Positions 7,450 to 52,207 of a stretch of 64,000 nucleotides of DNA are shown here, one piece after another. The notes beneath the pieces were generated by a model. It was not told where the DNA came from and made no database searches. It saw only the letters and a program-made list of their open reading frames with translations. The stretch lies in the IMG/VR virus record IMGVR_UViG_3300027899_000001, positions 248,001 through 312,000 of that record; one strand, written 5' to 3'. The first letter of the stretch is position 1. Each line of letters starts with the position of its first letter. Position numbers and translations under genes: made by a program.

Positions 7450-7496
7450 TTTCTTTATTTTTAATTGTTACATTTTTTATGCGTTTTATTTGCATA

Positions 7497-7835
7497 TCAT
7501 ACAATGATGAATCTTGAGTATTGTTCTTGATATTCTCTAGACCAATCAGTAATGAATCCTTCGTCTTTCCACGAAATATAATCTTCCCGAAAATTTTCCA
7601 ACACATATTCAAAAAATTTTTTATAGTCACCTGAACTTAAATAATCTATTCTAGATACGGGAATTGTGAATGTATGTAAAGTTCCTCTAACTCTCCAATA
7701 ATAATGTAATATATCAGTTAAAGGATTTTTATCAAATATTCCATATTCTACATACAGCGGAGTTACCCATCCTTCGGGATTAATTTCAATAGTTTTTATG
7801 TTTATAAGTTCTGAAAAATCAAAATTATGTGGCAT
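7497..7835 (-). CDS. Hypothetical protein
   Basis: 112 aa ORF. Confidence 0.55.
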   Translation of the reverse strand: MPHNFDFSELINIKTIEINPEGWVTPLYVEYGIFDKNPLTDILHYYWRVRGTLHTFTIPVSRIDYLSSGDYKKFFEYVLENFREDYISWKDEGFITDWSREYQEQYSRFIIV

Positions 7836-8918: not shown

Positions 8919-9290
8919 TTAATTTTCTTGAACAGGATAAGAATTTCTATTTTCCATTTCTTTAATTACTTTTACGTATGATTTTTCTTCAGTATCAGGA
9001 GTATATAATTTAACAAGTTTAACGGGTTTTGACATCGCAAATGCCATACCTAAATCGAAGTGAGATCCTTTACTATTTACATCCCAGAAAATATCAACTC
9101 TATCAGCTTGTTGCATAAATTCCATATGTTTTCTACAAATAAAATAGCCAGTTGGATCAGTTTGATCGACAGCGTATTTGGGATTATGAACAGTATGGCC
9201 TTCTCCTTTTAATAATTCAACATAAGTATCTATTTCTTGTTGTTGATCATCTGTTACACCTCTTACGGGACAAATTAAATGTATTTTCAT
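8919..9290 (-). CDS. Nucleoside 2-deoxyribosyltransferase / N-glycosidase-like protein (NDT/Rcl/MilB fold)
   Basis: 'IHLICPVRG', 'MQQADRV', 'SKGSHFDLGMAFAMSKPV' motifs. Confidence 0.6.
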   Translation of the reverse strand: MKIHLICPVRGVTDDQQQEIDTYVELLKGEGHTVHNPKYAVDQTDPTGYFICRKHMEFMQQADRVDIFWDVNSKGSHFDLGMAFAMSKPVKLVKLYTPDTEEKSYVKVIKEMENRNSYPVQEN

Positions 9291-9934
9291 AAGTTTTGTT
9301 TTTTAAGTTTCCAATATTTTTTTAATCCTTCTGTTATTTTTAATCTTGATTCTAATGATACTGTTTTATTTTTATTTCCTATACTTATTTTTTGTCTAGT
9401 TTCTATTGAAGAACTTTTCCCTTTATACCCTGAATTTTTTCCTTTTCTTTTTTTACTCATTTTTTCTTTTGTTTCAATAGATGCTATTTTACCAATATGT
9501 GATTTACTATTTTTAATTTTGTGTTCTTCTGTATGAGGTTTTTGCATTTTTTCTATTACTTCTATTCTTTTCATTGCTAATTTTGTTTTTTCGCTTATAT
9601 TTTTTCGTTGTTCTTCAGTCATGGGTATACTTTTAATTTTTTCAATAGCATATTCATAATCTTTTGCTGATATATTATATTTCAGTTTTTTACTAGATGC
9701 CATTCTAAGAAAGGCGTATGCAATTTTTCGATTTTCATTATAAATATATGTTAATAATTTATGACAAATAAAGTGTTCTTTAGCTGTTAATAAAACTTTA
9801 TTTTCTTCATTATCATTACCCCCTAAACATTTTGGTAATATATGATGATTTTCATAATATACACTTGTTTCTTTTAATCTATTTTCTGATTTTGAATTTT
9901 GAATTATAGATTTATATATTTTTTGATAATTCAT
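9287..9934 (-). mobile_element. Free-standing HNH homing endonuclease with NUMOD3-like repeats
   Basis: 'YYENHHILPKCLGG.DN.EN.V.LTAKEHF.CH.LL' followed by basic repeats. Confidence 0.8.
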
Positions 9935-11010: not shown

Positions 11011-11676
11011 TTATTTATCAGTTTTAAATTTGCAATTTATAAAATGATATCTTATCATATTTGGGCCTCTACCTATTAAATTACAATATGGGCATATTAG
11101 TGTTTTAAAATTTTTAGGTTTTCCTTTTCTTTTTAAAGACATTTCATCTTTAATTTTTTTAGCTCGTTCTATTCCAAATATTTCTTCATATGTTTTACCA
11201 GTATTTTCTTTTGCACGTTTAACAATTCCATACGATTGATAATTTTTACCATACATTCCATTTTTTTCTCCTTTTATATCATTAGAATGCTTAATTTTTC
11301 TTTCTTCGGTATAATTAGATTTTAATGTTTCAGACATTTTAATTAACGTTTCATTTGAATGTTTTTTTCCAAACATGCCATTATCTTCTCCAAAAAACGC
11401 ACCGCCTACTGCATCATTTTTTAAATTATAATATAATGGATTATTTTTGGCATCTACTTCTTTTAATGTTTTATCTTCTATTTCTCTAAATTTATTTCCT
11501 ATATAAAGTATTTTTCTTTCAAAATTATCAACTCCGTATTTTTTAATAGCATTTATAAACACAGTTCCTGATCCTATATAATTATCTTGAACATCTCCAA
11601 GATGTGATCCTATATATTTTTTTCCATTTATATTATTTGTCCATTCGTAGACAAACCCACAATCATCATTAATCAT
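11011..11676 (-). mobile_element. Free-standing GIY-YIG (Seg-like) homing endonuclease
   Basis: 'GFVYEWTNNINGKKYIGSH...YIGSG...' plus NUMOD3 'GMFGKKHS' repeats. Confidence 0.8.
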
Positions 11677-11682
11677 TAGCTA

Positions 11683-12384
11683 TTATACATTATATTTTAA
11701 AAAATCTTTTCGAGTTATACAGGCATTACCAGTTTCTATATAATGTTCAAGTAAATAAAATTGTTTTTCATATAAATGTAAACTTCCACTATTCCATATA
11801 ATTGCTCTTTTATTTATATGTAAATCATCACCCAATTTGTCTAAGATATATTTATGCCATGCGTAATCATTTCTATAGCCTGCCCATGCATCATTAGATC
11901 TCATTAACACATAAGAATATAAAATATTATTTCTAATCAAAAATTGAACAGCATAAGTACACATAAAATCATTTTTATTATTTTTATTATAATCTTCCCA
12001 CATAGTAGGACGATTATAAATCATTACACCTCGTCTTGAACTTTTTTGTTGTGTTAATTCTGTTAAACAATTTTTATATTGATAACCATTTTCTTTTGAA
12101 AAAACACACCAACCATAATTAGAATTTATAAATCCGCTTGGGTCTGCGACGTTTTTCCATATTGTAGGCGTATTTTTTATATCATTAACATTCAAAGATT
12201 GAGATAAATACCAATCAAGTTCATTTTTTACATATTCTTCATTAGTTTTTCCAAATATATATGATTCATCTGCTATAAATTGTGCACATATAAGATCAAT
12301 AACTTTTCCACCAAATTTATCAGTTTCAAATTTTTGTTCTTTATATTTTTTAACGAATTGATTTCTGATATCTTTTACTTTCAT
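11683..12384 (-). CDS. gp42: dCMP hydroxymethylase (T4 gp42-like, thymidylate synthase fold)
   Basis: 'INSNYGW', catalytic 'DFMCT', 'MRSND...GYRNDYAW', 'IIWNSGSLHLY' closely parallel T4 gp42 as recalled, including the dCMP-specifying Asp in RND. Confidence 0.85.
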   Translation of the reverse strand: MKVKDIRNQFVKKYKEQKFETDKFGGKVIDLICAQFIADESYIFGKTNEEYVKNELDWYLSQSLNVNDIKNTPTIWKNVADPSGFINSNYGWCVFSKENGYQYKNCLTELTQQKSSRRGVMIYNRPTMWEDYNKNNKNDFMCTYAVQFLIRNNILYSYVLMRSNDAWAGYRNDYAWHKYILDKLGDDLHINKRAIIWNSGSLHLYEKQFYLLEHYIETGNACITRKDFLKYNV

Positions 12385-13268: not shown

Positions 13269-13569
13269 TTTCTAAAGTATTATTTGTTTCATCTTGTTTT
13301 ACAGATGGCGAGCAATTAAGATACTCAAAAGCAAACATTTTACGAGTAAATTTTTTACTCCATCCAAAGTGTTTTGCTAATAAATTTACAGCCCATTCAT
13401 ACCATTCATCATGTTGAGCTTGAGTTACTTCATATTTTTTATAAAATGCTCGAAAATCTTTTTCACCCACCCATTCTTTTTCTACTTGAGCTATTGTTGT
13501 GTTATGATAAGGAACTAACCAACCATCTATTAAATCATCAAGAGTTGGCTCCTTTTTTCTTGTTCTCAT
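13243..13569 (-). CDS. Hypothetical protein
   Basis: 108 aa ORF with an ATGA overlap to the kinase. Confidence 0.55.
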   Translation of the reverse strand: MRTRKKEPTLDDLIDGWLVPYHNTTIAQVEKEWVGEKDFRAFYKKYEVTQAQHDEWYEWAVNLLAKHFGWSKKFTRKMFAFEYLNCSPSVKQDETNNTLENEKKVEIL

Positions 13570-14180
13570 TTTACAAATTGTATTACTTCTTTTAATATTT
13601 GTTTTTTAGATCTAAACGCAGTTTCTTCCATAACAACTACTTCATCTACTTTTAACATAAGTTTATTTTTTATTTTTGAAAAATCATGTGCTTCTTTAAA
13701 CAATTCAAGTTCTTTAGTTTTTTGTTCTAAATTTTGTGAAAAAGAATCGCCATCTTCTTTAAGTAAAAAGAAATAAGGATCTGCTGTTAAAGTAATAAGA
13801 TATATGTCAAATTTATTGTCAACATAAGGTAATTCAGTAATTTCCCAGTTCATTAATTTATTTTTCAAAAAATTACCATCTACGTTTCTAAACATTTGAC
13901 CATATACATATTCTCCTAAGTGTGATCTATTCCATATAATTATGTCTTCATAATAATTATATCTAGAATAGCAAAAAACATTTTTAATTTTATGAACTAA
14001 TTGAATTTCATTATCAAAACATTTAAATTGATAATCTAAAGTTTCTTCAACAGTCATGCCTTTAGGAGGTTTTCCAAAATGTCTTATTGTAATATTATTA
14101 TAATCAAACTTTTTACAAATACCTTCAATAAGAGTAGATTTACCAAGTCTATCTCCCCCCTCGATCACAATGAGTTTCAT
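13566..14180 (-). CDS. Deoxynucleoside monophosphate kinase (thymidylate-kinase-like P-loop)
   Basis: 'IVIEGGDRLGKST' P-loop; 'WNRSHLGEYVYG' DR-type motif. Confidence 0.8.
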   Translation of the reverse strand: MKLIVIEGGDRLGKSTLIEGICKKFDYNNITIRHFGKPPKGMTVEETLDYQFKCFDNEIQLVHKIKNVFCYSRYNYYEDIIIWNRSHLGEYVYGQMFRNVDGNFLKNKLMNWEITELPYVDNKFDIYLITLTADPYFFLLKEDGDSFSQNLEQKTKELELFKEAHDFSKIKNKLMLKVDEVVVMEETAFRSKKQILKEVIQFVK

Positions 14181-15069
14181 ATTTAATAAATTTTTTATTA
14201 TATCTTTCTGTAAATATTAATTTTTTATCTTCTATTAAATTTTTTATTTCTTCAAAAGATACTTGTTTTACACATTCAGTTAATTTATATTTAAAATTTT
14301 GTTGTTTACAAAATACCTCAGCGGCTTCTTTTTTTCTTGCAACTGTATCGCTATTCCATAATTTTTTAGGCTTAATTTCTATTAAAAATTTATCTTCAAT
14401 TAAAAAATCTGGATAATACGTTCTTTTGTTTCCGTTATAGTCAATATATTCAATTTTATATTTCTTTTTTTCAGCTCCTTCCCATTTTAAATTAAATCTT
14501 TCAATAACATATATCATATATGATAATTCTTTTAGAGATCTAAAAAACCACCCTTTATACCAACCACTCCAACCATTACCTGAACCCTGAGGAGAAGGCT
14601 TACCATACATATTATTTTTATCGCCTTTACGAGATTCACTATAATGTTGTCGTAATCGTTTACCTGTTTCTTCACCCCAGATTTGTTCAATGGTTTTTCC
14701 ATTTTGATCTAATGAGGCCCATCCATGCGAATATTTACCACCAAAATTTGCATTATTTTTTCCACTATTTGCTGTAGAATTTTTTTCTTTAGCAATAATA
14801 GCACCATCAATTCCTAAAATTTCTTCTAATGTTTTATTTTTTAAACTTTTATTATATTGAATTAATTTATTAGAATTTCGAATGCCTTCTTTATATTGCT
14901 GTTTATTCTTACAGCTTCTGCATAAATCTTTATAATATTTCTGAAATCCTAGTTGTTGATTTAATAAAGAAGAATCCCATATATTATCACATTCATCACA
15001 TTGAATTATTATTCGTTGTTTATTAGTTATTGTAGAATTTTTTAATTTAATTACTTCACTTAAAATCAT
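14149..15069 (-). mobile_element. Homing-endonuclease-like protein (Zn finger + NUMOD3-like repeats + TnsA-like PD-(D/E)xK nuclease)
   Basis: CDEC/CRSC; 'NNMYGK'; 'YYPDFLIEDKFLIEIKP'. Confidence 0.7.
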
Positions 15070-15397: not shown

Positions 15398-15811
15398 TTA
15401 TAACTTCATCAAGTGTAAAAGTTTTTCACTTGATATAGTTAACGGTTCATTAACTGTTTCTTCTGAATTTATTGTAGGCGGGTGAGTCATATATATTCCA
15501 TATTTATCAACTAATTTAAGAAAAGCATCTTCAATACAGTTTGAATCTAATGTTCCATTTTTTAAATTAACTAAAGTAGAATATGTACTACTATCTAAAT
15601 TAGTATATCCTTGTTGACTAAATGACGCATGAGTTCCTGGCATTCCAGGAGGACCTTGAATTCCTGTCATTCCCGGTTGACCCACAGGTCCTACACTTCC
15701 TGAAATTCCTTCAGTTAATAAACTTGCTCTTACGTAATTTTTCATCCATTGTTCTTTTTTATCATCAATTGCATTAGTTTTTAATCTCGGTTCAATACTT
15801 GTATATCCCAT
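15398..15811 (-). CDS. Hypothetical protein with a short collagen-like (G-X-Y)n tract
   Basis: GISGSVGPVGQPGMTGIQGPPGMPG. Confidence 0.6.
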   Translation of the reverse strand: MGYTSIEPRLKTNAIDDKKEQWMKNYVRASLLTEGISGSVGPVGQPGMTGIQGPPGMPGTHASFSQQGYTNLDSSTYSTLVNLKNGTLDSNCIEDAFLKLVDKYGIYMTHPPTINSEETVNEPLTISSEKLLHLMKL

Positions 15812-17022
15812 TAGAATAAAGATTTTGATTTATTATTTAATTCTTTTGTATTATCCTGCATATAAACAGATTGAGTAGATAATGTACGATTACCTTTTAT
15901 TATTTCAACTATTTCTCGAGTTACATCCTCACATGTGCAAACTGGAACATTTTGAGTTATTTTAGGATATTCCTTTATACTTTCAAGTTCATAATCATGA
16001 GGTAATCCCATCAGGTGCATATATTCTCTTATATTAATAAGTCTATCCTCTGAAGGATGAAGTGTTCTATTCATCATCTCAGATATCACCGCGTACACAT
16101 AATCTCTATCTAATCCAAGAACACGATATCCAAGTCTAAAATTTTTACCCATCTCAGTCTTTTTAATAACATGAGCAGTATTCTTTTTAACTATATTAGA
16201 CGCGTTCGGTAAAGTTTCAAGAAAATCTTTAAAATCATATAATAATCCCTGTCGTTTAAGATAATCGTATGAAGTTAAATGAGTTTTATATGTTTTATAA
16301 ATTTCATTTTTCCAATCAGTTCCATATATTTTTTTAAAGAATTTTGTTATTTCATATTCATTTACATCTGAATCTTCATTCATATATTTATCTTGATAAC
16401 TTGCTCTTTTAGGTATATCTTTTAAATATTTAGAAATATTTGGCATCGGTCTATTATATGAATGTAATATAGGAGCGTATTTACCTTTTAGAAATATTGC
16501 AAATGTACGAGGACGAAATTGGGGAATTCCGTGCTTTATCGTATTTGTTTTATAAAATGTAACTGCATAATCATTTGCTTCAGCAATTTTAATAAGATTA
16601 TTTCTTACATCTTCTCCACTGCCTGTATAAAGGCCCGGAGCATTTTCAAATGCATAAATAGTTGGACTTAAAAAATCTAAGATAAAGACTGCTGATTTAT
16701 ACATCCATTCATTTGGTTCTGCAGTTCCTCTTGAACCCTTAGGACGTTGTGCAGCTTGAGATAATCCAGAACAAGGTGGAACTGCTGTGACAAAATCAAG
16801 ATTTTTAGAAAATTCTTGTAGTTTATGAACTTCGTTATCATTCATATTATCTAATTGAATATAAGGCACATCGTGTCCTTTTTTCAAAAGATATCTTCTC
16901 AATAAATCGTCATTAGCTTTAAAAGGAGTATAGGATGTAATTGCCAGAGGAGGGCTTCCTATTATATTCATATTTCCAAGAGCAAAACCTCCAGCAAGAG
17001 GTATATGTGCTATGTAACGCAT
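15811..17022 (-). CDS. DNA cytosine-C5 methyltransferase homolog with a divergent motif I
   Basis: Motif IV 'PPCSGLS', VI 'ENAPG', VIII 'GIPQFRPRTF', IX 'RLINIREYMHLMGLP', X 'QNVP'. Motif I reads 'IPLAGG' instead of FxGxGG. Confidence 0.75.
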   Translation of the reverse strand: MRYIAHIPLAGGFALGNMNIIGSPPLAITSYTPFKANDDLLRRYLLKKGHDVPYIQLDNMNDNEVHKLQEFSKNLDFVTAVPPCSGLSQAAQRPKGSRGTAEPNEWMYKSAVFILDFLSPTIYAFENAPGLYTGSGEDVRNNLIKIAEANDYAVTFYKTNTIKHGIPQFRPRTFAIFLKGKYAPILHSYNRPMPNISKYLKDIPKRASYQDKYMNEDSDVNEYEITKFFKKIYGTDWKNEIYKTYKTHLTSYDYLKRQGLLYDFKDFLETLPNASNIVKKNTAHVIKKTEMGKNFRLGYRVLGLDRDYVYAVISEMMNRTLHPSEDRLINIREYMHLMGLPHDYELESIKEYPKITQNVPVCTCEDVTREIVEIIKGNRTLSTQSVYMQDNTKELNNKSKSLF

Positions 17023-19946: not shown

Positions 19947-20966
19947 ATGAAAGAATTCAAAAAAGAAAAGAATTTATTTATATGTGAAGAATGCCAACGC
20001 ACATTTGTTAAAATCGATGGGTTAAGTAAACATATAAGACTTAATCACTATTCTCAAAAAACATATTATGATAAATGGCTAAAAGAAAATGATGAAAATA
20101 CTTGTAAAATTTGTAAAAAAGAAACAACATTTATAGGATTAGGAAAAGGTTATAAAAATTGTTGTTCATCTGACTGCACTAAAAAATTTAGAACACATAA
20201 AATTCAAGCAACTTTATTACTTAGATATGGTGTAAATTCTCCTACTAAAGATAAAACTATTAGAGAAAAAGTAAATAAAACGATGATAAAAAAATATGGG
20301 CATAAATGCCCTATGAAAAATGAAAAAATACAAAAAGAAATAAAACAAAATAATTTAAAAAAATTGGAAGTAGAATATCCATTTCAGTCTTTAAAAATTC
20401 AAGAAAAAATAATTATATCTAATTTAGAAAATTTCGGAGTAAAAAATACGTTTCAACGAATAGATGTAAAAAATAAAATAAAAGAAACTTGTATGCAAAG
20501 ATATGGAGTTGAAAATCCAAATAATAATAAAAAAGTTAGAGATAAAATAGAAAAAACTTGTATAGATAAATATGGAGTTAAAAATCCATCACAGAATAAA
20601 GAAGTGCATGATAAACAACAAAAAAACGCGTGTTATTCAAAAAAATATAAAAATACTATTATAAACTATAGAGCATCTTATGAATATGATTTTTTAGAAA
20701 AATTTTACCCAGTATATTCTGATATAGTTAATGGCCCAACAATAAAATATCAATATAAAAATGAATCCAGATTATATTTTCCAGATTTTTACATTCCATC
20801 TTTAAATCTTATCGTTGAAATAAAAAATTCTTATCTTTTAAAAAAAGATAAAGAAAAAATAGAAGCAAAGAAAAAATATACTATTCTTAATGGGTATAAT
20901 TATTTAATAATTACTAATAAAGATTATTCTACATTTTCTTCATATCTTAAAATTTCTCCAGTATAA
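19947..20966 (+). mobile_element. Homing-endonuclease-like protein (C2H2 finger, YGV.NP repeats, C-terminal PD-(D/E)xK nuclease)
   Basis: 'FICEECQR...HIRLNH'; repeated 'YGVxNP'; 'YFPDFYIPSLNLIVEIK'. Confidence 0.7.
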
Positions 20967-22099
20967 CTTTTAAATTCATATACATGATCTTTATGCGATA
21001 TAATGTTATCACAGACTTCAATTTTTCCTAAATGAGAATCTACAATAAATGTTGGACACGCGTAACCACTCGTCCAGCCTCTCAATGCTGAGATAATCTG
21101 AAGTCCTTTATTAATAGTAGTTCTAAAATGACTTGTACCTGCAACAAGATCGCATGCATATATATAATATGGTCTAACTCTAATTGTAAGAAGACTATTC
21201 ATAAGCTTTTTCATAATTTGTGGGTCATCGTTAACGCCTTTGAGTAATACTGTTTGAGAACCTAAAGGAATTCCTGCATTCGCAAGCTTTTCACACGCTT
21301 GTTTAACTTCTGAAGTTATTTCATCGGGATGAGAGAAATGAATACTTATGAATAAAGGATGATATTTCTTTAAGATATTAGTTAACTCTGGCGTAATTCT
21401 TTGAGGTAACACAACAGGAACTTTAGTTCCAATTCTTAAGAACTCAACGTGTTTTATTTCTTTAATTTCTTTAAGAAGATATTCTATACTATCGTCATTC
21501 ATAGTTAAAGGATCTCCTCCAGATAATAACACATCTCGTATCTCAGTATGTTCTCTAATATACTGAAGCGCCTTTTCCCACGCTTTCTTAGGAATTCGTT
21601 CTCTATTTATGAGTCTACTTCTTGTACAGTATCGACAATTTGAAGAACAAAAGTCCGTGGTTAGAAATAATACACGATCTGGATATCTATGAACTATACA
21701 TTCCACAGGACTTTGATGTTCTTCGTTCAGCGAGTCGTTTTTCTCATTTTCAGTTACGTGAAGTTCGTTATTGGTTGGAATAACGCACTTTCCGATTCCT
21801 TCTGAAAGAGAAGTGATTGTACTTGCATAATATGGAGTAATTCTTAATGGTAAATTTATATTCTTGGATAATTCATAATTTGAATCTCCAAATATACGAC
21901 TCAATTCTTCATATGTAGTTATACTGTTACGTATCTGCCAATGCCAATCATTCCAATTAGTATCAGATACATCTGAATAAAATCTATTTTTAAAAGATTG
22001 AGTTTTTTCGGAGATGATAAGAGGGGGTTCTTCAGTATCAACGATAATCTCCTGAGCTGGTTGATACTGGTTTTTAGACGAATCTATTTGTTGTTCCAT
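20924..22099 (-). CDS. kamA: KamA-family radical SAM lysine 2,3-aminomutase
   Basis: 'WNDWHWQIRN', 'VHRYPDRVLF...CSSNCRYCTR', 'LLSGGDPL', PLP-Lys 'LLKGVND', 'VRPYY'. Confidence 0.85.
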   Translation of the reverse strand: MEQQIDSSKNQYQPAQEIIVDTEEPPLIISEKTQSFKNRFYSDVSDTNWNDWHWQIRNSITTYEELSRIFGDSNYELSKNINLPLRITPYYASTITSLSEGIGKCVIPTNNELHVTENEKNDSLNEEHQSPVECIVHRYPDRVLFLTTDFCSSNCRYCTRSRLINRERIPKKAWEKALQYIREHTEIRDVLLSGGDPLTMNDDSIEYLLKEIKEIKHVEFLRIGTKVPVVLPQRITPELTNILKKYHPLFISIHFSHPDEITSEVKQACEKLANAGIPLGSQTVLLKGVNDDPQIMKKLMNSLLTIRVRPYYIYACDLVAGTSHFRTTINKGLQIISALRGWTSGYACPTFIVDSHLGKIEVCDNIISHKDHVYEFKSYTGEILRYEENVE

Positions 22100-23126: not shown

Positions 23127-23816
23127 TTGGAAATCATGAATCATCAAAAAGTCTATGAATCTATAATTCAGAGAGCAAAATCTGAAAATAGAATTAAACT
23201 TAATAGAAATAATGAAAATTATATTTATTATGAAAATCATCATATTTTGCCCAAATGCTTAGGTGGAAATAATGATAAAGATAATTTGGTTTTATTAACA
23301 GCAAAGGAACATTATGTCTGTCATAAATTACTTACATATATTTATAAAGAAAACGCAAAAATATACGGTGCTTTTTTCTATATGTCATTTAATAAAAAAT
23401 ATGACAAATTTTTATCAGCTCGAGATTATGCTTACGCAATAGAATTAAATACTATCGCACATATTAATAAAAAACAATCGTTAGAAACAAAAGAAAAAAG
23501 AAGAAAATCAATGTTAGGTAAAAACAAAGGAAAAAAAATGAAAAAAGAATTTGGCGAAAACATTTCTAAACGTTTAAAAGGAAACATTCCTTGGAATAAA
23601 GGAAAACCCGGGTGTTTTTCAAATGATACTATTAATAAAATGTCAATAGCTGCAATAGGAGTAAAAAATTCATTAGAATCAAATGAAAAAAATAGGCAAT
23701 CTCATATAGGAAAAACTACATGGAATAAAGGATTAACAAAAGAAATTGATGAACGGGTTTTAAAATGTTCACTTAAAATTTCTAAAACTCTTAAAAATAA
23801 AAATTTATTAAATTAA
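23127..23816 (+). mobile_element. Free-standing HNH homing endonuclease
   Basis: 'YYENHHILPKCLGGNNDKDNLVLLTAKEHYVCHKLL'; paralog of 9287-9934; 'PWNKG' repeats. Confidence 0.8.
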
Positions 23817-24517
23817 GACTGGCCCGGACCCTTTATAGCAATTCCGCTAATTGCAGGGTTGGATCTATCATTAGGTTGCGAAAATTGTTTTACCCTATTC
23901 GCATCAGTTATATCGGCAGCATTTTGCTGAAGACCTATACTCTCTTCAACTTCTCCTTTGGCTGCTACTGCTTTACCATCTGTAACTTTATTAAGTTCTT
24001 CTGGAGCCATTGTTCCAAATCCTGAACGTTCTTCCCAATAATCTTTTCCATAATCAATTGTAAGTTGTTCTCCAGCTTTTATAGTTCTTGCTGCGATAAA
24101 ATACATTTGACGATTATCTTTATTATAAGCAAATGTGATATTTGGTTGAGGTGAATGCCCATATAAACTGCCATATCCAAGCACAATACCGTATTGCATT
24201 TTATTTTTATCGATTTCAAAAATATAATCTTTTAATCTTGGAACTGCTTTTGCTTCAAGACCCACAAAAATAATAGGCGCAATTTCAACTATTTCTCCTT
24301 TAGCATATTGTGTTTTAGCTAACACAAGATATCCTCCATTCTTTTTCTTAGAATATTCTACACGATTAACATTGAACACTTCTTTACGCGCTGTCAAGAA
24401 ACCCCCTTTATCAGCAATATGTGAAGGTTTTACTACGATATCTGTTTTTTCAAACGGATTGTAAAATTCTTCATCTAGTTTAGCAAATTGATCAAATGTT
24501 TTAATTTTATATTTCAT
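23813..24517 (-). CDS. SET-domain protein methyltransferase
   Basis: 'KNGGYLVLAK...KGEIVE', 'GSLYGHSPQPN' (NHS-like), 'AARTIKAGEQLTIDYG'. Confidence 0.8.
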   Translation of the reverse strand: MKYKIKTFDQFAKLDEEFYNPFEKTDIVVKPSHIADKGGFLTARKEVFNVNRVEYSKKKNGGYLVLAKTQYAKGEIVEIAPIIFVGLEAKAVPRLKDYIFEIDKNKMQYGIVLGYGSLYGHSPQPNITFAYNKDNRQMYFIAARTIKAGEQLTIDYGKDYWEERSGFGTMAPEELNKVTDGKAVAAKGEVEESIGLQQNAADITDANRVKQFSQPNDRSNPAISGIAIKGPGQS

Positions 24518-28281: not shown

Positions 28282-28300
28282 TAAAATATAAAATTTAAAA

Positions 28301-28324
28301 CAAAGGGAACTTCGGTTCCCTTTG
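28301..28324 (+). terminator. Rho-independent terminator with a cUUCGg loop
   Basis: CAAAGGGAAC-TTCG-GTTCCCTTTG. Confidence 0.8.
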
Positions 28325-28370
28325 TTATTTAACAAAACTTTAACAAGATATCAGCGTATAATATAAAATA

Positions 28371-28396: not shown

Positions 28397-29203
28397 ATGA
28401 GCAAACACTTTGACGAAATTATCATAATTGGTCTTGAGAGGTGTCAAAACAGAATTGACATGGTTGAATCTCAACTTAAAAATTTTAATCTTCCCTATCG
28501 TATCTTTCCCGCATTTGATGGACAGCAAATAGCAAATCCGTCAATGAAAACAATGACACGTGCTCCTCTTAAAGCATTTTCTAATTTTAATCCCAGTAGA
28601 CCTAAATATCTTCCGGGTATGTTATGTTGTGGGTTATCTCATATAGCAGCAATGAAACATGCTCAGATGATGAATCTTAAAGGAATACTTTTACTTGAAG
28701 ATGATGTCATATTATCTCCTGATTTTGCAGATAGATTAAAATTGATTGAAGAAGTTCCAGACGATGCAGATTTAATTTATATTGGAGCTATTGTGACAAG
28801 CGATCATTTAAGTAAGAAATATAAAATATCTGAACATGTATGGGATGCTCAGAAAATGAGTCTTTACGCAACTCATTCCTTTATAGTCACGCGTAAAGGA
28901 TATACACCAGTTATTAAAAAAATGATGGAATGCGAAGATACATGCGATTCATTATTAGTTGAAGGTGTTCAAAAACAGGAAATTAAAGCATATGCAGTAA
29001 TTCCATTTTGTACATATCAAATAGAAGGAACATCAGAAATTGATGGTAAAAAGAAATCATTAAATCATACAAAAACTTTATATTCTCCGGATGAAAATTT
29101 TAGTAACATGGGAGGCTATGATCGTAAAACTAAAATGAATGTTAATGATATAACAAGTGAATATAGCTACGAAAAAAGTGCAAAACCTAAATCTTTATTC
29201 TAA
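28397..29203 (+). CDS. Glycosyltransferase, GT25-like
   Basis: 'IIGLER...R', 'AFDG', 'LCCGLSH', 'LLLEDD'; ends KPKSLF. Confidence 0.75.
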   Translation: MSKHFDEIIIIGLERCQNRIDMVESQLKNFNLPYRIFPAFDGQQIANPSMKTMTRAPLKAFSNFNPSRPKYLPGMLCCGLSHIAAMKHAQMMNLKGILLLEDDVILSPDFADRLKLIEEVPDDADLIYIGAIVTSDHLSKKYKISEHVWDAQKMSLYATHSFIVTRKGYTPVIKKMMECEDTCDSLLVEGVQKQEIKAYAVIPFCTYQIEGTSEIDGKKKSLNHTKTLYSPDENFSNMGGYDRKTKMNVNDITSEYSYEKSAKPKSLF

Positions 29204-29337
29204 TGAACGAAAACAAATGTCCAAAACATGAATTAGTCTTCGTAAGAAATATCTACGAAGACAAAAAAAGTGAATGGAAATGTTCTAAATGTGGAAAAAC
29301 AAAATATAAAAAATATCTTAATAAAAGAGAAAAATGA
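29203..29337 (+). CDS. Small Zn-ribbon protein (44 aa)
   Basis: Hand-translated MNENKCPKH...WKCSKCGK...*; overlaps both neighbours. Confidence 0.45.
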   Translation: MNENKCPKHELVFVRNIYEDKKSEWKCSKCGKTKYKKYLNKREK

Positions 29338-29561
29338 ATGCACAAGAATATATCGATTATCTTAAAGATTTTGCTGAAAAAATAGATGATGAAACTCTTA
29401 AATCAGTAGGAATTAAATCTATTGCAATTATACAAGAAGTTCTTGCAAAAGATCCAATGAAACCAAAATTATTGGTAAAAAAATTAGATGAAACACAATA
29501 TAGTGTATATGGTAGAGATGAAATTTTAACAGAATTGAACAGAATATTTAGAGACGTATGA
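29334..29561 (+). CDS. Hypothetical protein
   Basis: 75 aa ORF. Confidence 0.55.
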   Translation: MNAQEYIDYLKDFAEKIDDETLKSVGIKSIAIIQEVLAKDPMKPKLLVKKLDETQYSVYGRDEILTELNRIFRDV

Positions 29562-30802
29562 AAATAGCTTTAGTAATGGGAAGAGGCGCAGAAGGCGCCG
29601 GAATTCAACGATATGTTATTGAATTATCGACATTTTTATCTAAAAAACAAATTGAACATATTATCTATATCATGGATGATAAAAAATGGGGACGTGGAGG
29701 ATTTCAAACATTTCCTCAAAAACCATCTATGATTACAAAAGATAACATTGATAATTTTTCAGATGTATTGAATAAATTTGATTATGTGTTTATCAATAGT
29801 GTTCCAAGTATTAAACATTCAGAATGGGCTATTGATGGATTTCTTAAAATGGTCAAGGGTATAAAAACCAAAAAGATTATATTTCAAAATGATCATAAAA
29901 TAGCTTCTATTCATAGAAATGCTAATTTTATTGAGATGTGTGGTCTTTGTGATGGTATAGTATCTCATAGTATTACATCTCCTTTCTATAATAAACTTGT
30001 AGATGTATATGGAGGCGCTGTTAGATCTAAATTTATTCAACTTCAAGTAGGATTTAATTTCTCTCAGTTAGCAAAATATCGTAAAGAAGATCATGTTAAA
30101 AAAATTACATATCTTGGTAGATATGCTACATTTAAACAACCTGACAGATTATTTGCTTTTCTTCCTTATGCTAAAGATAATGATATATTACTTGAAATGA
30201 AAGGTGTTGAAAGATCACTTGGCGCTTTGAATATCTTTTATGATGATATCGAAAATAAAATTCCCAAACATGATATCATTCAGGTTGATAAAAATTTCTT
30301 TAAAACTGGAATGTCAGCTTTAGATGCTGATAGAAGTTATGAACATGTTTATATATATGGTCCTTATGATTATGTAGATGGAATGGAAACATTAAGCAAA
30401 TCATTAGTAGGCGCAGATTTTTATCATCTTAATGCAGATGCATATGGAGATAATTTTGAATATGCTCAATGTGAAATAATTGGAGTAGGAACAGTTCCTA
30501 TGTTTGATTATCATTGGGCAGAAAATTGTTACATATATGAAAATGGTAAGAAAACTGATAAAAGATTTGTAGAACTTGATACTTATGGACTTTTTGTTAA
30601 AAAAGATTTAACAAATGTAAAGGAAATAGTAGAAAAAATTAACAATATATATTCTGATAAGAAACTTCATAAACAATATTTAGATTGTAGTTTTGAAGTT
30701 ACACGAAATCATTGTGATAGTGAATTTATATTTCAAAATCTTATAGATGGTATTTCAGGATTAGAAAAAGCAAAACAAATAAAAACTAAACCCTTATTTT
30801 AA
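29558..30802 (+). CDS. agt: DNA alpha-glucosyltransferase, T4 AGT-like
   Basis: 'MGRGAEGAGI', 'INSVP', 'NDH...S.HRN', 'SHS', 'GRYATFK', 'GVERS', 'EYAQCE...GTVP.F' parallel T4 AGT as recalled; ends KTKPLF. Confidence 0.8.
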   Translation: MKIALVMGRGAEGAGIQRYVIELSTFLSKKQIEHIIYIMDDKKWGRGGFQTFPQKPSMITKDNIDNFSDVLNKFDYVFINSVPSIKHSEWAIDGFLKMVKGIKTKKIIFQNDHKIASIHRNANFIEMCGLCDGIVSHSITSPFYNKLVDVYGGAVRSKFIQLQVGFNFSQLAKYRKEDHVKKITYLGRYATFKQPDRLFAFLPYAKDNDILLEMKGVERSLGALNIFYDDIENKIPKHDIIQVDKNFFKTGMSALDADRSYEHVYIYGPYDYVDGMETLSKSLVGADFYHLNADAYGDNFEYAQCEIIGVGTVPMFDYHWAENCYIYENGKKTDKRFVELDTYGLFVKKDLTNVKEIVEKINNIYSDKKLHKQYLDCSFEVTRNHCDSEFIFQNLIDGISGLEKAKQIKTKPLF

Positions 30803-30803
30803 A

Positions 30804-31730
30804 ATGGCACGACCTAAAAAAGTAAAAGTAGAAGAACCTGCTAAAATAGCAGTAGAAGAAAAAGAAACTCTAAATGATATTATAATTGAAAAAAGTAACA
30901 TTTATCCATTAGGAGAAATACAGATTGTAGATAATCCGGTGTTTGAAGTTCCATATTTGGAATTTAATTATAATAAAGAGTCTGACACCATTTCTCTAGA
31001 AAAACAAAAACAAACAATACAAGTTAGCACTTCTAGAGTAGGCACGCATATAACTTCAGAACAAGCTAAAGAATTTAAAGATAAATTTAATTTAGACTTA
31101 AACGAAGTTGTTAAAAAAGCATTGATAAATGAAGCTTCTCAACAATTAACAAAACATTATATATCAAAAATTGGAGAAGCTGCTACAGAAAATTATATTA
31201 AAGAATATACCCGTTGGGATAAGTTTAAAGTATGGGCATATAAACTTGTTAAAAAACAATATAGAAAAAAAATAAAAATTCAAACTTCTAAAGAGTTAAA
31301 TTATAGAATTTTAAAAGAAGCCAATAATATTGCAGCAAATAGTAGATGGGGAAGTGGAAATTTTGTTATATGTAGTTTAAAAACTGCTATGCTTTTACAG
31401 AGTTCATCTAATTTTGTATATGCTACTTTAAATAAACCTGTATCTACAAATGGCAGTATTTATCCAATTGGAACTATTGCAGGCGTGACTATTTATGTAG
31501 ATCCTTATATGTTATATCAAGATACTAATGTATACATAGGAAGAAGAAATAATACAAATCAGCCTGGCATAAAACTATTTTTTAAAGAATCTTATAGTTA
31601 TATGCAAACGGAAGGTCTTGGTGCTCCAAAGGTTATATTAGAAATGAGATACGCAATCGCAGGCGTTGGTAAAAATTATAAAGACCAATATAGAAAATTT
31701 GAATACATTGATAAAATCATAAACAAATGA
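30804..31730 (+). CDS. Truncated paralog of the major capsid protein
   Basis: 'NGSIYPIGTIAGVTIYVDPYMLYQDTNVYIGR...TEGLGAPKVILEMRYA' aligns with 'NGSLYPLGTIAGMTLYVDPNMLYSDTRVLVGR...TEGTGAPKVIIKTRYA' in 56803-58575. Confidence 0.8.
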   Translation: MARPKKVKVEEPAKIAVEEKETLNDIIIEKSNIYPLGEIQIVDNPVFEVPYLEFNYNKESDTISLEKQKQTIQVSTSRVGTHITSEQAKEFKDKFNLDLNEVVKKALINEASQQLTKHYISKIGEAATENYIKEYTRWDKFKVWAYKLVKKQYRKKIKIQTSKELNYRILKEANNIAANSRWGSGNFVICSLKTAMLLQSSSNFVYATLNKPVSTNGSIYPIGTIAGVTIYVDPYMLYQDTNVYIGRRNNTNQPGIKLFFKESYSYMQTEGLGAPKVILEMRYAIAGVGKNYKDQYRKFEYIDKIINK

Positions 31731-32298: not shown

Positions 32299-33018
32299 AT
32301 GAGTTTAATAGACGAACGATATGATAAACGAGTTTGTATTTGTCTTAAAGAAAGAGATGACAAGTATAAATATATGTTGGCACAATTTATTAAAAATAAT
32401 ATAGACGCTGAATTTTATAGGCCTGTAATTCAAGGACATGCACATCATTTTGTAAAACCTTATGCACAAATCTATAACAGAAGGGATATAAATTATGTAA
32501 GATTTAATGAAGAATTTCCTAATGAATTTGGATGTTTCTTAAGTCATTATAATGTTATTAAATCTGCTTTATTAGATGGTGCTGAAAGTATTTTTGTATT
32601 TGAAGATGATTGCGCATTTCATAAAGATTTTACTACATTACTTCCTAAATATTTAGATACTATTCCTGAAGGAACAGATGGAATTTTGCTTTATTCTTTT
32701 ATGTATCAATTTGAACCTCAAAATGTTAGATTAAAACCGAGATGGACAAAAGGATTTGCAAGTTGGTCTTTTTTAGCATATGGATTAAATAGAAGGGCAA
32801 TGGAAGGATATATTAAACTTCAAGATGAAACACCAATGATTGCAGATAGAGGATCTTGGACTATGATGACACAAATGAATTATAATTTTGTTATCGCAAG
32901 CCCTCCGTTAGTAGTTCCTTCAAAAATACTTACATCAAGTATTCGAGGAGAAAATAAAAATTATGAAAAAAACAAGAGTGTATTTTTATTAGGAATAAAT
33001 GAAACAGATTATGAGTAA
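32299..33018 (+). CDS. Glycosyltransferase, GT25-like
   Basis: 'EFGCFLSH', 'FVFEDD'. Confidence 0.7.
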   Translation: MSLIDERYDKRVCICLKERDDKYKYMLAQFIKNNIDAEFYRPVIQGHAHHFVKPYAQIYNRRDINYVRFNEEFPNEFGCFLSHYNVIKSALLDGAESIFVFEDDCAFHKDFTTLLPKYLDTIPEGTDGILLYSFMYQFEPQNVRLKPRWTKGFASWSFLAYGLNRRAMEGYIKLQDETPMIADRGSWTMMTQMNYNFVIASPPLVVPSKILTSSIRGENKNYEKNKSVFLLGINETDYE

Positions 33019-34651: not shown

Positions 34652-35383
34652 GTGGAAAAGATTAAAGTTTATACATATCACGGATTTGGCGATCAGTGTA
34701 TCTGTTATGGAATTCTTAAAGAATTTGCAAAAAGATATAATGAAGTAAAAGTGTATTCTGATGTAATGAATAAAAATACATTTAATTCAATTACTCGTTT
34801 ATATTCTAGCCTGAAAAATGTAGAATTAATAGATGAAGTCTATAAAGAAGAAATTCACGCTGCTGATCATAAAATAGCTCATACTAAATACTGGTTTGAT
34901 AAAGTTCTTCCATGGTATCAAGATCCATCATTACCTCCACCAGAATGGTTTAAAGATGATTGGTGGTTTGATAGACAATGGTATTTAAATGCTAGTTTGC
35001 CATTTAATTTAAAATGGGATAATTTTTATTTTGAAAGAGATTTAAATAAAGAAAAAGAAGTTTTTTATGATATCTTGGGCTTAAAAGATAATCAAGAATT
35101 TTTATTTTTTCATGAAGATCCTGTAAGAAATTATAATATTAATAAAAAACATCTAAATGCAAATATTAAATGGATAGATTTTTTTAATTATCAAGATATT
35201 AGCATATTAGATATTTTATATACTATTGAACATGCTAAAGAAGTGCATACTTTTAATACAAGTACATTAACATTTATTGATTTAATGAATATTCAGCACC
35301 CTGCTTTATATTATCATATGTATGTAAGACCATCAATATTTGATAGTATAAATTTAAGATTACCTTGGAATTTAATAACATAA
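34652..35383 (+). CDS. Putative GT-B glycosyltransferase, paralog 1 of 3
   Basis: 'HGFGDQ...G', 'WDNFYFERD', 'YTIEHAKEVH'. Confidence 0.55.
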   Translation: MEKIKVYTYHGFGDQCICYGILKEFAKRYNEVKVYSDVMNKNTFNSITRLYSSLKNVELIDEVYKEEIHAADHKIAHTKYWFDKVLPWYQDPSLPPPEWFKDDWWFDRQWYLNASLPFNLKWDNFYFERDLNKEKEVFYDILGLKDNQEFLFFHEDPVRNYNINKKHLNANIKWIDFFNYQDISILDILYTIEHAKEVHTFNTSTLTFIDLMNIQHPALYYHMYVRPSIFDSINLRLPWNLIT

Positions 35384-35386
35384 AAT

Positions 35387-36124
35387 ATGAAAGTATATAC
35401 ACATACGCAATTTGGAGATCATGTTGTAACATTTGGAATTATTAAAGAATATTCAAAACAATATGATGAAGTAATATTAACTATTAGTGATAACGCACAA
35501 GGAACTTTAGTAAGTTCTTCTCATAATGATAATATTAAAAGATTATTTTCAAGTATTCCTAATGTAGTTTTAACAACTGAACGATTTGCAGATAATGAAT
35601 ATGATAAAATTATTAGTAGCGGTTGGTGGTATGAACAAGTTAAGCCATGGTTTGAAAATCAAGATTTACCATATACATTAGGAGATAATATGATAGGAGA
35701 TAGATTTTGGTATATTCTTGGTGGTGTTCCATTTTATTTAAAATGGGATAATTTTTACTTTGAAAGAGATCCCAAAAAAGAAAAAGAAGCATATTATGAT
35801 ATATTTGGATTAAAAGAAAATCAACAATATTTATTTTTACATGAAGATCCAAAAAGAAATAATGGAATATGTATAAATAGGAAGTATGTTAGTGATATGT
35901 ATAGAGTAATTGAATTAGCAAAATATCCTGAAGTAAGCGTGTTAGATATTTTATACACTATTGAAAAAGCTAAAGAAGTGCATATTATTAATACTGGATT
36001 AAGATCTTTTATAGATTTAATGAATATAAATCATAACAATTTAATTTATCATAAATACACAAGACCTAATCCAGTAGAACAAGCAGCAATGAGATTAAAT
36101 TGGAAAGTAATAGATAAATTTTAA
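35387..36124 (+). CDS. Putative GT-B glycosyltransferase, paralog 2 of 3
   Basis: 'QFGDH...G', 'WDNFYFERD', 'YTIEKAKEVH'. Confidence 0.55.
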   Translation: MKVYTHTQFGDHVVTFGIIKEYSKQYDEVILTISDNAQGTLVSSSHNDNIKRLFSSIPNVVLTTERFADNEYDKIISSGWWYEQVKPWFENQDLPYTLGDNMIGDRFWYILGGVPFYLKWDNFYFERDPKKEKEAYYDIFGLKENQQYLFLHEDPKRNNGICINRKYVSDMYRVIELAKYPEVSVLDILYTIEKAKEVHIINTGLRSFIDLMNINHNNLIYHKYTRPNPVEQAAMRLNWKVIDKF

Positions 36125-43840: not shown

Positions 43841-44512
43841 ATGAATATAGTTGTAATCAGTCTCGAAAGAGCTGTAAATAGAAGAGAACGTATAAAAGCT
43901 CAATTAGAAGAAAGAAAGATTGATGCAATAATAATGGATGCTGTTGATGGAAAAAACCTTTCTGAACAAGAACTTAATAAAAGAATATCTTTACAGGGAG
44001 GGTATCGTTTTGGTGAAAAATTTAAGCCAGGAGAAATAGCATGTACTATGTCTCATATAAATGCACTTAAAATTGCACAAGAAAAAGATTGGCCATATTT
44101 AATTGTATTAGAAGATGATATAATCATGGCTGATGATTTTGAAAAAAGAATAAATTTTTTAATTAGAATTCTTCCTGCATTTTGGGAACACGTATATCTT
44201 TCAGGAATTCCACGTTTAGGATTTGCGCCTAAACCTTTATTAGATCTACCTAATATTGTTCTTTCTATTTTTACAGAGTGCACACATTCAATGATGATAA
44301 AAAATACAGCATATCAAAAATTAATTGATCATTTATCGCAATTTGAAACTACAACAGATGATATGTATAATAGCATTATAAGTAATAAGAAACTTGCATC
44401 TTTTACATATTATCCCTTTGTTACTTACCCATCAGATGATTATACATATATATGGGATCTTAAATTAGAAAGAGAACATAAAGCAAAACAATACTTCAGA
44501 AACACTATATAA
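43841..44512 (+). CDS. Glycosyltransferase, GT25-like
   Basis: 'ISLER..RR', 'AVDG', 'GEIAC..SH', 'LEDD'. Confidence 0.85.
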   Translation: MNIVVISLERAVNRRERIKAQLEERKIDAIIMDAVDGKNLSEQELNKRISLQGGYRFGEKFKPGEIACTMSHINALKIAQEKDWPYLIVLEDDIIMADDFEKRINFLIRILPAFWEHVYLSGIPRLGFAPKPLLDLPNIVLSIFTECTHSMMIKNTAYQKLIDHLSQFETTTDDMYNSIISNKKLASFTYYPFVTYPSDDYTYIWDLKLEREHKAKQYFRNTI

Positions 44513-47804: not shown

Positions 47805-48566
47805 ATGGGAAGAAAAAAACAAGAAATTATATTTGAAAAAAGACTCTGCGAAGAATGCAGTAATGAATTTATAATAAATAAAAAATCAAAAAAGAGGTTT
47901 TGTTGTTCTATTTGTGCAAAAAGAAATAATGGAAAAAGAAATAAAGGAAAAAAACATTTTGATGAAATAAACAAAAAGAAAGGATTAATTGGAGAAAAAA
48001 ATCCAATGTTTGGAAGATCATATTATGATATTTGGATAAATAAATTTGGAAAAGAGATAGCAGACGAAAAATTAAATCAAATTAAAGAAAATAAAAAAGG
48101 TAAAAAACATACTAAAGAACATAATAAAAAAATAAGTGAATCATTACGTGGTTTAAAAAATCCTTTCTTTGGAAAAAAACATAAACCCGAGTCATTAGCA
48201 AAAATAAGTGAAAACCATAGAGATTGTAAAGATAAAAATAATCCTATGTTTGGGCAGGGCGATAAAATTAGAAGAGAAAAAAATGGTTCATGGTTTGGAG
48301 GAATAAGTAATGAGCCTTATGATACACTATTTAATGAAGAACTTAAAACTAAAGTAAGAATTAGAGATAATTATAAATGTGTTATTTGTGGAAAATCTGG
48401 GTATGTTGTGCATCATATAGATTATAATAAACATAATAGTATAGAAGAAAACTTAGTAACTTTGTGTAAAAGTGATCATATGAAAACAAATTCTCATAGA
48501 GATAGTTGGATAGAATTTTTTAAATCGATAATAAATATGTTGTATGAGTATAAAATTAAGCAATAA
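47805..48566 (+). mobile_element. Free-standing HNH endonuclease with NUMOD3-like repeats
   Basis: 'NPMFG/NPFFG' repeats; C-terminal 'RDNYKC..C...VHHIDYNK.N....NL.TLC..H'. Confidence 0.8.
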
Positions 48567-51604: not shown

Positions 51605-52207
51605 ATGGACAGACCTGGGCAATTAAATAGAGAAACGGTAATAGGAAAAAAAATATATGAATTAACAACACTTCCTGAAATTTCTACAGTAGTTGATATT
51701 GGAACATGGAATGGTAATGGAAGTACTCGATGTATTTATGAAGGAATATTAGAGAGTAGAAAAAAAGATTATAAAGTTTTATCGTTTGAAATTGATAGAA
51801 ATTTTTATAAACAAGCAAAATTTAATTTATTTCCTCCTTTAAACAATTTTGATTTAGTTTATGGATCTTTAGTATCTTATGAAGAACTAATAAAGCAACG
51901 AGAAATTTATGGCAATCATAAATGGTTAGAAGAAGATTTAGTAAATTTATCAAAGGCTCCTTATGTATTTAATATGGTGCCCGAGAAAATTAATTTATGT
52001 GTAATGGATGGAGGAGAATTTTCAGGATATATAGAATTTACTAAATTATGGAAAAGATGTGATTACATTGTATTAGATGATACTCTTACATATAAACACA
52101 CGGAAAGTAGAAAATTTATACTCGATAATTTAGATGATTTTACTGTAATTTATGATAATATTAATGAAAGAAATGGTTGTATGATAGTTAATGTTAAACA
52201 GAAATAA
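51605..52207 (+). CDS. Methyltransferase-like protein
   Basis: 'VDIGTWNG.GST', 'MDGGEF', 'LDD'. Confidence 0.55.
   Translation: MDRPGQLNRETVIGKKIYELTTLPEISTVVDIGTWNGNGSTRCIYEGILESRKKDYKVLSFEIDRNFYKQAKFNLFPPLNNFDLVYGSLVSYEELIKQREIYGNHKWLEEDLVNLSKAPYVFNMVPEKINLCVMDGGEFSGYIEFTKLWKRCDYIVLDDTLTYKHTESRKFILDNLDDFTVIYDNINERNGCMIVNVKQK

Follow-up and report, generated by a model that had tools for sequence, protein, structure and literature searches.

A C-terminal tail shared with the DNA polymerase suggests that a family-25 glycosyltransferase and an alpha-glucosyltransferase of a freshwater megaphage may be recruited to DNA by the sliding clamp

We analyzed a 64,000-nucleotide stretch of phage DNA (hereafter, the window), which corresponds to bases 248001–312000 of the 405,016-bp IMG/VR virus record IMGVR_UViG_3300027899_000001, and concentrated on two neighboring plus-strand genes. 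The first, GT25a (28397–29203), encodes a 268-residue family-25 glycosyltransferase of the GT-A type; the second, AGT (29558–30802), encodes a 414-residue homolog of DNA alpha-glucosyltransferase. Both proteins end in a short basic tail, K-P-K-S-L-F in GT25a (...AKPKSLF; 29183–29200) and K-T-K-P-L-F in AGT (...IKTKPLF; 30782–30799). An earlier note on this DNA had recorded the tail; what its reader overlooked is that the tail is most likely the peptide that also closes the DNA polymerase and the flap nuclease of the phage, a putative clamp-binding motif. We lean towards the view that GT25a and AGT are glycosyltransferases recruited by the sliding clamp to act on DNA that contains 5-hydroxymethylcytosine (hmC). 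Coordinates refer to the window unless the genome numbering (G000) is given.

The tail is rare in the genome and strictly terminal. Among the 127,380 residues encoded by the open reading frames (ORFs) of the genome, the pattern K.K[SP]LF is found three times, every time at a C-terminus, where about 0.002 occurrences are expected. The tail that the earlier note described as common to the two glycosyltransferases is thus real and beyond chance and, as detailed below, conserved. Its third and last carrier is a 403-residue homolog of C5-cytosine DNA methyltransferases (15811–17022, minus strand; ...NKSKSLF), which matches PF00145 (1.6e-22) and in which the PPC and ENA motifs are retained. When only the last two residues are considered, 11 of 473 ORFs end in LF compared with 2.0 expected. 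The family-B DNA polymerase is split, and its C-terminal half, PolB-C, ends in ...YARSLF, and the 5'-3' flap exonuclease ends in ...GTALF. A 156-residue protein, orf156 (...KTKRLF), is encoded directly after a DnaB-like helicase; the replication module to which both belong further contains a UvsX/RecA-like ORF, one half of the polymerase, the clamp and a subunit of topoisomerase II. A 140-residue protein, orf140 (...KAKALF), gives a PHROG match with the annotation DNA methyltransferase (9e-18); an N6_Mtase-like ORF and a helicase are encoded immediately upstream of it. Among the LF-ended proteins with a recognizable function, DNA enzymes therefore predominate. None of the ORFs of the glycan and deoxysugar island downstream of AGT (33670–56270, plus strand) has the basic K-x-LF tail, which among the glycosyltransferases of this region is confined to GT25a and AGT; a GT8-like ORF inside the island (52191–52967, plus strand; ...HKQYNTLF) has an LF end that lacks the lysines. 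The tail groups GT25a with the DNA enzymes and not with the remainder of the island, in agreement with the DNA-directed role that the earlier note had proposed.

Stop-codon recoding was considered as a source of false C-termini and rejected, since every tail-bearing gene stops at TAA; as TAA closes all the genes discussed here, their C-termini are independent of how TAG is read. The genome contains a tmRNA and 39 tRNAs, one of which, in the tRNA array, is an amber-suppressor-like tRNA(CTA) (G000 353926–353999, outside the window); TAG closes only 25 of its 304 long ORFs, and in-frame TAG is present in the flap-nuclease genes of Lak phages. No recoded genes were seen in the window. The two genes of the family-B polymerase, both on the minus strand and outside the window, are about 48 kb apart (G000 92925–94094 and about 142068–143219), and in Lak phages the C-terminal part of the polymerase is split further.

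The tail is conserved among relatives of both glycosyltransferases as an addition to the catalytic domain. In AGT, residues 400–414 lie past the end of the alignment with T4 AGT. For GT25a, relatives were collected by searching 1.84 billion proteins exhaustively with HMMER. Among them, a GT25 subclade that is 31–63% identical to GT25a has the core, a variable linker and then a terminal x-K-x-L-F (or -LL), with the ends ...VKTLF, ...TKKLF, ...AKTLF, ...EKKLF, ...NKKLF and ...PTQLF; most of the tailed representatives sit on contigs too short to reveal their gene neighborhood. The extension and the tail are missing in shorter close relatives, in the two GT25 paralogs of the same genome (GT25b and GT25c, described below) and in about 70 more distant viral GT25 proteins. 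Both the adjacency of GT25 and AGT and the tails are kept in L034, where the GT25 (60% identical) ends in ...KSKPLL and the AGT (80%) in ...KSKSLF, and in L116/L117, where the GT25 (63%) ends in ...NVKTLF and is followed 47 bp later by an AGT (67%) that ends in ...KSKSLF. In a further relative, L035, the tailed pair consists of a GT25 (56%; ...KSKTLF) and a C5-cytosine methyltransferase (58%; ...KKVKSLF).

The tail of the polymerase is likewise kept in five relatives at 49–78% identity, with ends of the form [KRS][SAQ]LF; the ends recorded are ARSLF, ARSLF, AKALF, ASALF, AKSLF and RTQLF, the first of them from a near-identical copy of this phage, and the contigs of these polymerase-bearing relatives are fragments that do not include GT25a. 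Another lineage (P0008, L118–L120) has a lone tailed GT25, with no AGT within 10 kb upstream or 0.6 kb downstream, and the one in L118 is not part of a glycan island. The GT25 homologs of Lak and other huge phages are untailed and located in glycan islands, and no homolog of AGT or of the C5-cytosine methyltransferase was found in six genomes of Lak and other huge phages. A different terminal motif is seen in another huge phage, LR756504.1 (L143–L174), in which LL closes more proteins than any other dipeptide (45 of 905 ORFs) and at least 25 small ORFs of 70–145 residues end in R-K-x-K-I-[DE]-[DE]-L-L.

The identity of both enzymes is as the earlier note had described it. AGT matches PF11440 (1.6e-11; 44.4 bits, cut-off 25) and phrog_2888 (3.8e-62), and its residues 1–399 cover all of T4 AGT (PDB 1Y8Z, 1XV5 and 1Y6F; E 1.6e-18) at 25% identity, with E values of 1e-18 to 1e-21 that establish full-length homology. 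T4 AGT ends in ...FDIITK and has nothing like the SLDFLF of its polymerase gp43, whereas the AGT analyzed here has a 15-residue extension that ends like the polymerase of its own phage. AGT is an ordinary member of its family with an unusual appended tail, and it very probably acts on hmC-containing DNA.

GT25a is recognized by Pfam and PHROG profiles (PF01755: 5.7e-14; 52.9 bits, cut-off 24), and its E101-D102-D103 motif is invariant or nearly so across 52 aligned sequences. The AlphaFold 2 model (pLDDT, predicted local distance difference test, 88.9) shows a confident GT-A core. The core spans residues 1 to about 245; beyond it come a linker and a C-terminal tail that is disordered, with pLDDT below 50 for residues 253–268. 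In Foldseek searches, the model matched Mimivirus R655 and human COLGALT1 best (E 1e-13), and bacterial beta-1,4-galactosyltransferases came next. GT25 is an inverting, beta-transferring family. Because its members transfer to a side-chain hydroxyl or to a sugar, both hmC and glucosyl-hmC are chemically plausible acceptors for GT25a. A genome scan with PF01755 revealed three copies, the other two being GT25b (32299–33018, plus strand; 19% identical to GT25a) and GT25c (43841–44512, plus strand; within the deoxysugar island), both untailed. The charge of the core gave no signal that distinguishes tailed from untailed GT25 proteins.

The DNA polymerase of T4-type phages binds the clamp through its extreme C-terminus, which in T4 gp43 reads SLDFLFG; T4 gp55 has SLDFLY. 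A distant GT25 of the untailed type in the contig of a relative (L142, 1471–2238, plus strand) ends in ...NQLDILFP, similar to the gp43 motif, which may be chance. The alpha-glucosyltransferase of T4 is reported to bind the gp45 clamp (Sommer 2004), as confirmed by a 2026 pull-down in which beta-glucosyltransferase showed no binding (PMC13216743). Searches of our genome for a clamp with PF09116, T4 gp45 and DnaN TIGR00663 gave no match, and a PF02916 match at 7451–7549 (13.8 bits) was discarded as spurious. Filtering of ORFs by size and isoelectric point (pI), followed by a structure search of the ESM Atlas, identified an acidic 259-residue ORF near a polymerase half (G000 96718–97497, minus strand), which has no Pfam or PHROG match and a predicted structure with TM-scores of 0.71–0.86 to clusters of gp45, PCNA and beta-clamp. 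The genome also encodes a gp44-like clamp loader, 41% identical to the loaders of Prevotella Lak megaphages, the closest named relatives.

The trimer of the gp45/PCNA-like clamp was co-folded with residues 229–268 of GT25a, alongside three controls. The ipSAE scores were 0.53, 0.54 and 0.54, compared with 0.00 for the best control, and the pLDDT of the partner was about 37; by the calibration of the method, a pass with a score of 0.60 or less is wrong in more cases than it is right, except where the guess was already a likely one. The outcome fits binding but falls short of establishing it. We consider it likely that the tail is a sliding-clamp-binding peptide. Its target could in principle be the beta clamp (DnaN) of the host, given that S-L-F-COOH corresponds to the last residues of the bacterial QL[SD]LF consensus and that no DnaN is encoded by the phage. 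This seems very improbable to us, because the phage has its own clamp and clamp loader, its own polymerase carries the tail, and the co-fold with the phage clamp scored 0.54 where the controls scored 0.00.

The modified base on which both enzymes would act would be supplied by a dCMP hydroxymethylase homologous to T4 gp42 (11683–12384, minus strand; 51% identical, E 7e-85). The catalytic Cys (in DFMCT) is retained, as is the Asp of RNDYAW that selects cytosine in T4 gp42. Since a gp42-type enzyme makes hydroxymethyl-dCMP, the DNA of the phage should carry hmC, which would provide the substrate that the earlier note's reading of AGT had presupposed. A dNMP (thymidylate) kinase-like ORF (13566–14180, minus strand) is a candidate hydroxymethyl-dCMP kinase, and a true thymidylate synthase is encoded separately elsewhere in the genome. 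A TET/JBP route to hmC was rejected, as no match to PF12851 was found in the genome.

We propose a model in which hydroxymethyl-dCMP made by the gp42-type enzyme would enter phage DNA as hmC. GT25a and AGT would be co-transcribed, each consisting of a catalytic domain with a flexible extension that ends in basic-x-basic-[SP]-L-F-COOH. Through such tails the clamp would tether GT25a, AGT, the polymerase, the flap exonuclease, the helicase-adjacent orf156, the C5 methylase and the N6-methylase-associated orf140, so that new DNA would be modified at or just behind the replication fork. AGT would place an alpha-linked glucose on hmC, and GT25a would either add a beta-linked hexose to that glucose, in the manner of T2 and T6, or glycosylate hmC directly, in the manner of T4 beta-glucosyltransferase.

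These two options for GT25a differ in the acceptor. The genome has no match to the T2/T6-type TAGT (PF20691) at E ≤ 0.1, and for beta-glucosyltransferase (PF09198) it gives only an 18-bit match, below the cut-off, on an unrelated 166-residue ORF; GT25a could therefore fill either role. The first option, which was that of the earlier note, is that AGT makes alpha-glucosyl-hmC and GT25a extends it with a beta-linked hexose to a disaccharide, as in T2 and T6. It draws on the adjacency of the two genes, which is kept in three relatives and fits sequential action, on the common use of GT25 enzymes to extend sugars, with bacterial beta-1,4-galactosyltransferases among the structural matches, and on published cases in which GT-A enzymes attach the second sugar of a 5hmC glycan (bioRxiv 10.1101/2023.12.21.572611). 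Nevertheless, no feature of GT25a separates a sugar acceptor from an hmC acceptor, its best structural relatives, COLGALT1 and R655, glycosylate a hydroxyl that does not belong to a sugar, and the tailed GT25 of P0008 and L118–L120 has no AGT in the surrounding sequence. We regard this option as unlikely.

The second option, that GT25a is an analog of T4 beta-glucosyltransferase and places a beta-hexose on those hmC residues that AGT does not reach, yielding two kinds of monosaccharide, is possible, although we would not bet on it. Consistent with it are the inverting chemistry of the family, the side-chain-hydroxyl enzymes among its solved members, the lack of a beta-glucosyltransferase homolog, and the pairing of alpha- and beta-glucosyltransferases in T4. 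The lone tailed GT25 genes, with no AGT nearby, tilt the choice of acceptor slightly towards direct action. No base-flipping or DNA-binding feature was identified in GT25a, however, and the tight, conserved linkage to AGT fits sequential action equally well.

Several observations weigh against a clamp-recruited DNA role altogether. The verdict on the co-fold was weak support, and no interface was reported. Solved GT25 relatives among the Foldseek matches work on hydroxylysine or sugars, never on DNA, and the catalytic core of GT25a is not basic (pI 6.6). Some of the LF-ended ORFs, namely an ankyrin protein and two of no assigned function, are not obvious DNA enzymes. The polymerase of LR756504 ends in LSLF, yet LF ends are not enriched in that genome (7 compared with 4.3 expected), and the flap-nuclease tails of Lak phages and LR756504 differ from their polymerase tails; the tail network is thus shown for the lineage of the present phage only. 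A gp56-type dCTPase was not found by BLAST, and a C5-cytosine methyltransferase with apparently intact catalytic motifs beside a gp42-type enzyme would be odd under full replacement of cytosine by hmC, as it would be left with no substrate; its presence hints that some cytosine may remain in the phage DNA. Finally, GT25a heads a large glycan island with two untailed GT25 paralogs and could serve that pathway.

The last point leads to an alternative in which GT25a is the first enzyme of the island and modifies a virion protein (gp23-like or collagen-like) or a host surface glycan, the tail being a signal for localization, turnover or packaging instead of a clamp-binding peptide. GT25a does stand at the head of a 25-kb glycan island, the GT25 homologs of other huge phages lie in such islands and lack an accompanying AGT, the co-fold is of little help against this view, and the known acceptors of the family are lipooligosaccharide (LOS) and collagen. 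A 137-residue ORF with a weak collagen-repeat match lies directly downstream of the C5-cytosine methyltransferase (15398–15811, minus strand). The start codon of this ORF shares base 15811 with the stop of the methyltransferase gene; solved GT25 enzymes glycosylate collagen hydroxylysine. We find this alternative, with both of its parts taken together, rather doubtful, since no other glycosyltransferase of the island has the basic K-x-LF tail, the other identifiable carriers of the tail, including the polymerase, are DNA enzymes, the tailed GT25 proteins form a subclade apart from those of the island type, and the lone tailed GT25 of L118 lies outside any glycan island. On balance, we judge a DNA acceptor for GT25a to be somewhat favored.

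The organization of the locus agrees with the earlier note's description of the two genes as co-operonic. The 354 bp between GT25a and AGT are filled by two small plus-strand ORFs, whose starts and stops overlap those of their neighbors. One, of 44 residues (29203–29337), is Zn-ribbon-like (CxxH...CxxC), its start overlaps the GT25a stop, and its C-terminal part is conserved in L034. The other, of 75 residues (29334–29561), has no named function and overlaps each neighbor by 4 bases; it is absent in L116, in which the gap between GT25 and AGT is 47 bp. No terminator-like site was found between GT25a and AGT, and a G+C-rich terminator-like hairpin (28299–28326) separates GT25a from an acidic 435-residue ORF upstream and is followed by a promoter-like site (28340–28369), so that, as judged from the sequence, the genes appear to be transcribed together. 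Directly 3' of AGT lies a short, 308-residue paralog of the gp23-like major capsid fold (30804–31730, plus strand), which could be a glycosylated decoration protein; its position is kept in L116 (32% identical) and not in L034.

The glycan and deoxysugar island fills the window from 32 to 56 kb, in keeping with the placement of the two genes at its head in the earlier note. It holds a large pathway for deoxy, amino and C-methyl sugars along with many glycosyltransferases. Among its genes are those for a DegT aminotransferase, an RmlD-like ORF, an NDP-hexose 2,3-dehydratase, a GFO/MocA reductase, a sugar C-methyltransferase and a GDP-mannose 4,6-dehydratase. Its transferases comprise a GT2-like ORF, a GT10 fucosyltransferase, two GT8-like ORFs, a GT47-like ORF, and FkbM and other methyltransferases; a radical SAM/SPASM ORF and an FAD oxidoreductase are also present, and two tandem paralogs occupy 34652–36124. 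GT8-like enzymes of other phages attach a second sugar to 5hmC glycans (bioRxiv 10.1101/2023.12.21.572611).

Elsewhere in the window, a nucleoside 2-deoxyribosyltransferase-like ORF, below the Pfam cut-off, lies a few kb from the dCMP hydroxymethylase (8919–9290, minus strand), and a radical SAM protein with a lysine-2,3-aminomutase-like C-terminal domain is encoded near the nucleotide-modification genes (20924–22099, minus strand). A SET-domain protein (23813–24517, minus strand; PF00856, 1e-11) is found at the same position upstream of GT25 in L034, L035 and L116. Homing-endonuclease-like ORFs (GIY-YIG, NUMOD3, HNH and TnsA-like; 9287–9934, 11011–11676, 14149–15069, 19947–20966 and 47805–48566) are scattered among the modification and sugar genes, and the insertions between GT25 and AGT differ in related contigs. 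The phage is a freshwater relative of the Lak megaphages. Its genome has direct terminal repeats and a G+C content of about 27%, and no similarity to known phages was found at the DNA level. The sole sequencing run that contains the locus is of freshwater metagenome DNA, and no RNA run contains it.

Among known systems, T4 is a close parallel: its AGT is homologous over its full length to the protein described here, a gp42-type enzyme that could supply hmC is present in both phages, and T4 alpha-glucosyltransferase binds gp45. The short hydrophobic-aromatic C-terminal motifs of T4/RB69 gp43, gp55 and gp33 are placed on the polymerase and on other clamp clients; the tail of the present phage likewise closes the polymerase, is shared with other putative clamp clients and follows a disordered linker. 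The motif here, however, is basic-x-[SAPQ]-L-F-COOH rather than SLDFLF, its predicted clients include two glycosyltransferases and methylases, and clamp binding is a prediction. Clamp peptides on DNA-modifying enzymes have a eukaryotic counterpart in the PIP boxes, such as that by which DNMT1 binds PCNA. The role that may be assigned to GT25a, addition of a second, beta-linked sugar to alpha-glucosyl-hmC, is performed in T2 and T6 by TAGT, a beta-glucosyl-HMC-alpha-glucosyltransferase of an unrelated family, of which GT25a would be an analog at most. T4 beta-glucosyltransferase, an inverting enzyme that acts directly on hmC beside the alpha-glucosyltransferase, exemplifies the other possible role, but it has a GT-B fold, is unrelated to GT25a and does not bind gp45. 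With the CAZy GT25 enzymes (bacterial LOS beta-1,4-galactosyltransferases, COLGALT1 and R655), GT25a shares the GT-A fold and the EDD motif, whereas no known member of that family acts on DNA, and the linker and K-x-LF tail are found only in the subclade of GT25a.

Phage gene clusters that combine methyltransferase, 5mYOX (TET) and glycosyltransferase genes direct the synthesis of mono-, di- and trisaccharides on 5hmC, as described by Pyle et al. (bioRxiv 10.1101/2023.12.21.572611). In those clusters, GT-A and GT-B enzymes of the lipopolysaccharide (LPS) and wall teichoic acid (WTA) type have been repurposed for DNA, and separate glycosyltransferases add the second sugars. Their hmC, however, is formed after replication by methyltransferase and TET, whereas the present phage has a gp42-type dCMP hydroxymethylase and no TET/JBP, and clamp tails are not described by Pyle et al. 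In the literature searched, there was no report of a GT25 enzyme acting on DNA or of phage DNA-modifying enzymes with clamp tails. Earlier publications already cover the repurposing of LPS/WTA-type glycosyltransferases, second-sugar enzymes among them, for DNA glycosylation, as well as clamp binding by T4 alpha-glucosyltransferase. What appears to be new is a GT25 enzyme in this proposed DNA role and the presence, on glycosyltransferases and also on DNA methylases, of a C-terminal motif like that of the polymerase. The suggestion in the earlier note of a new role for the family is weakened by the published finding that LPS- or teichoic-acid-like phage glycosyltransferases build mono- to trisaccharides on 5hmC. 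In its boldest form, which we think improbable, the proposal would be that basic-x-[SP]-L-F is a common clamp ticket in a freshwater megaphage lineage, carried by the polymerase, the flap nuclease and an entire group of modification enzymes (AGT, GT25a, the C5 methylase and an N6-methylase piece), and that GT25a, the first GT25 DNA glycosyltransferase, builds a disaccharide with AGT at the replication fork.

Huge phages encode many glycosyltransferases, and sequence alone usually cannot separate those directed at DNA from those directed at proteins or glycans. If clamp recruitment of GT25a and AGT is borne out, a tail shared with the polymerase would be a simple marker, readable from sequence, of the DNA-directed enzymes among them. 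It would also demonstrate a coupling of DNA modification to replication, an idea so far based on the interaction of T4 alpha-glucosyltransferase with gp45, and GT25 would join the families repurposed for DNA hypermodification. The DNA of this phage may bear an unusual glycan relevant to the evasion of restriction and CRISPR.

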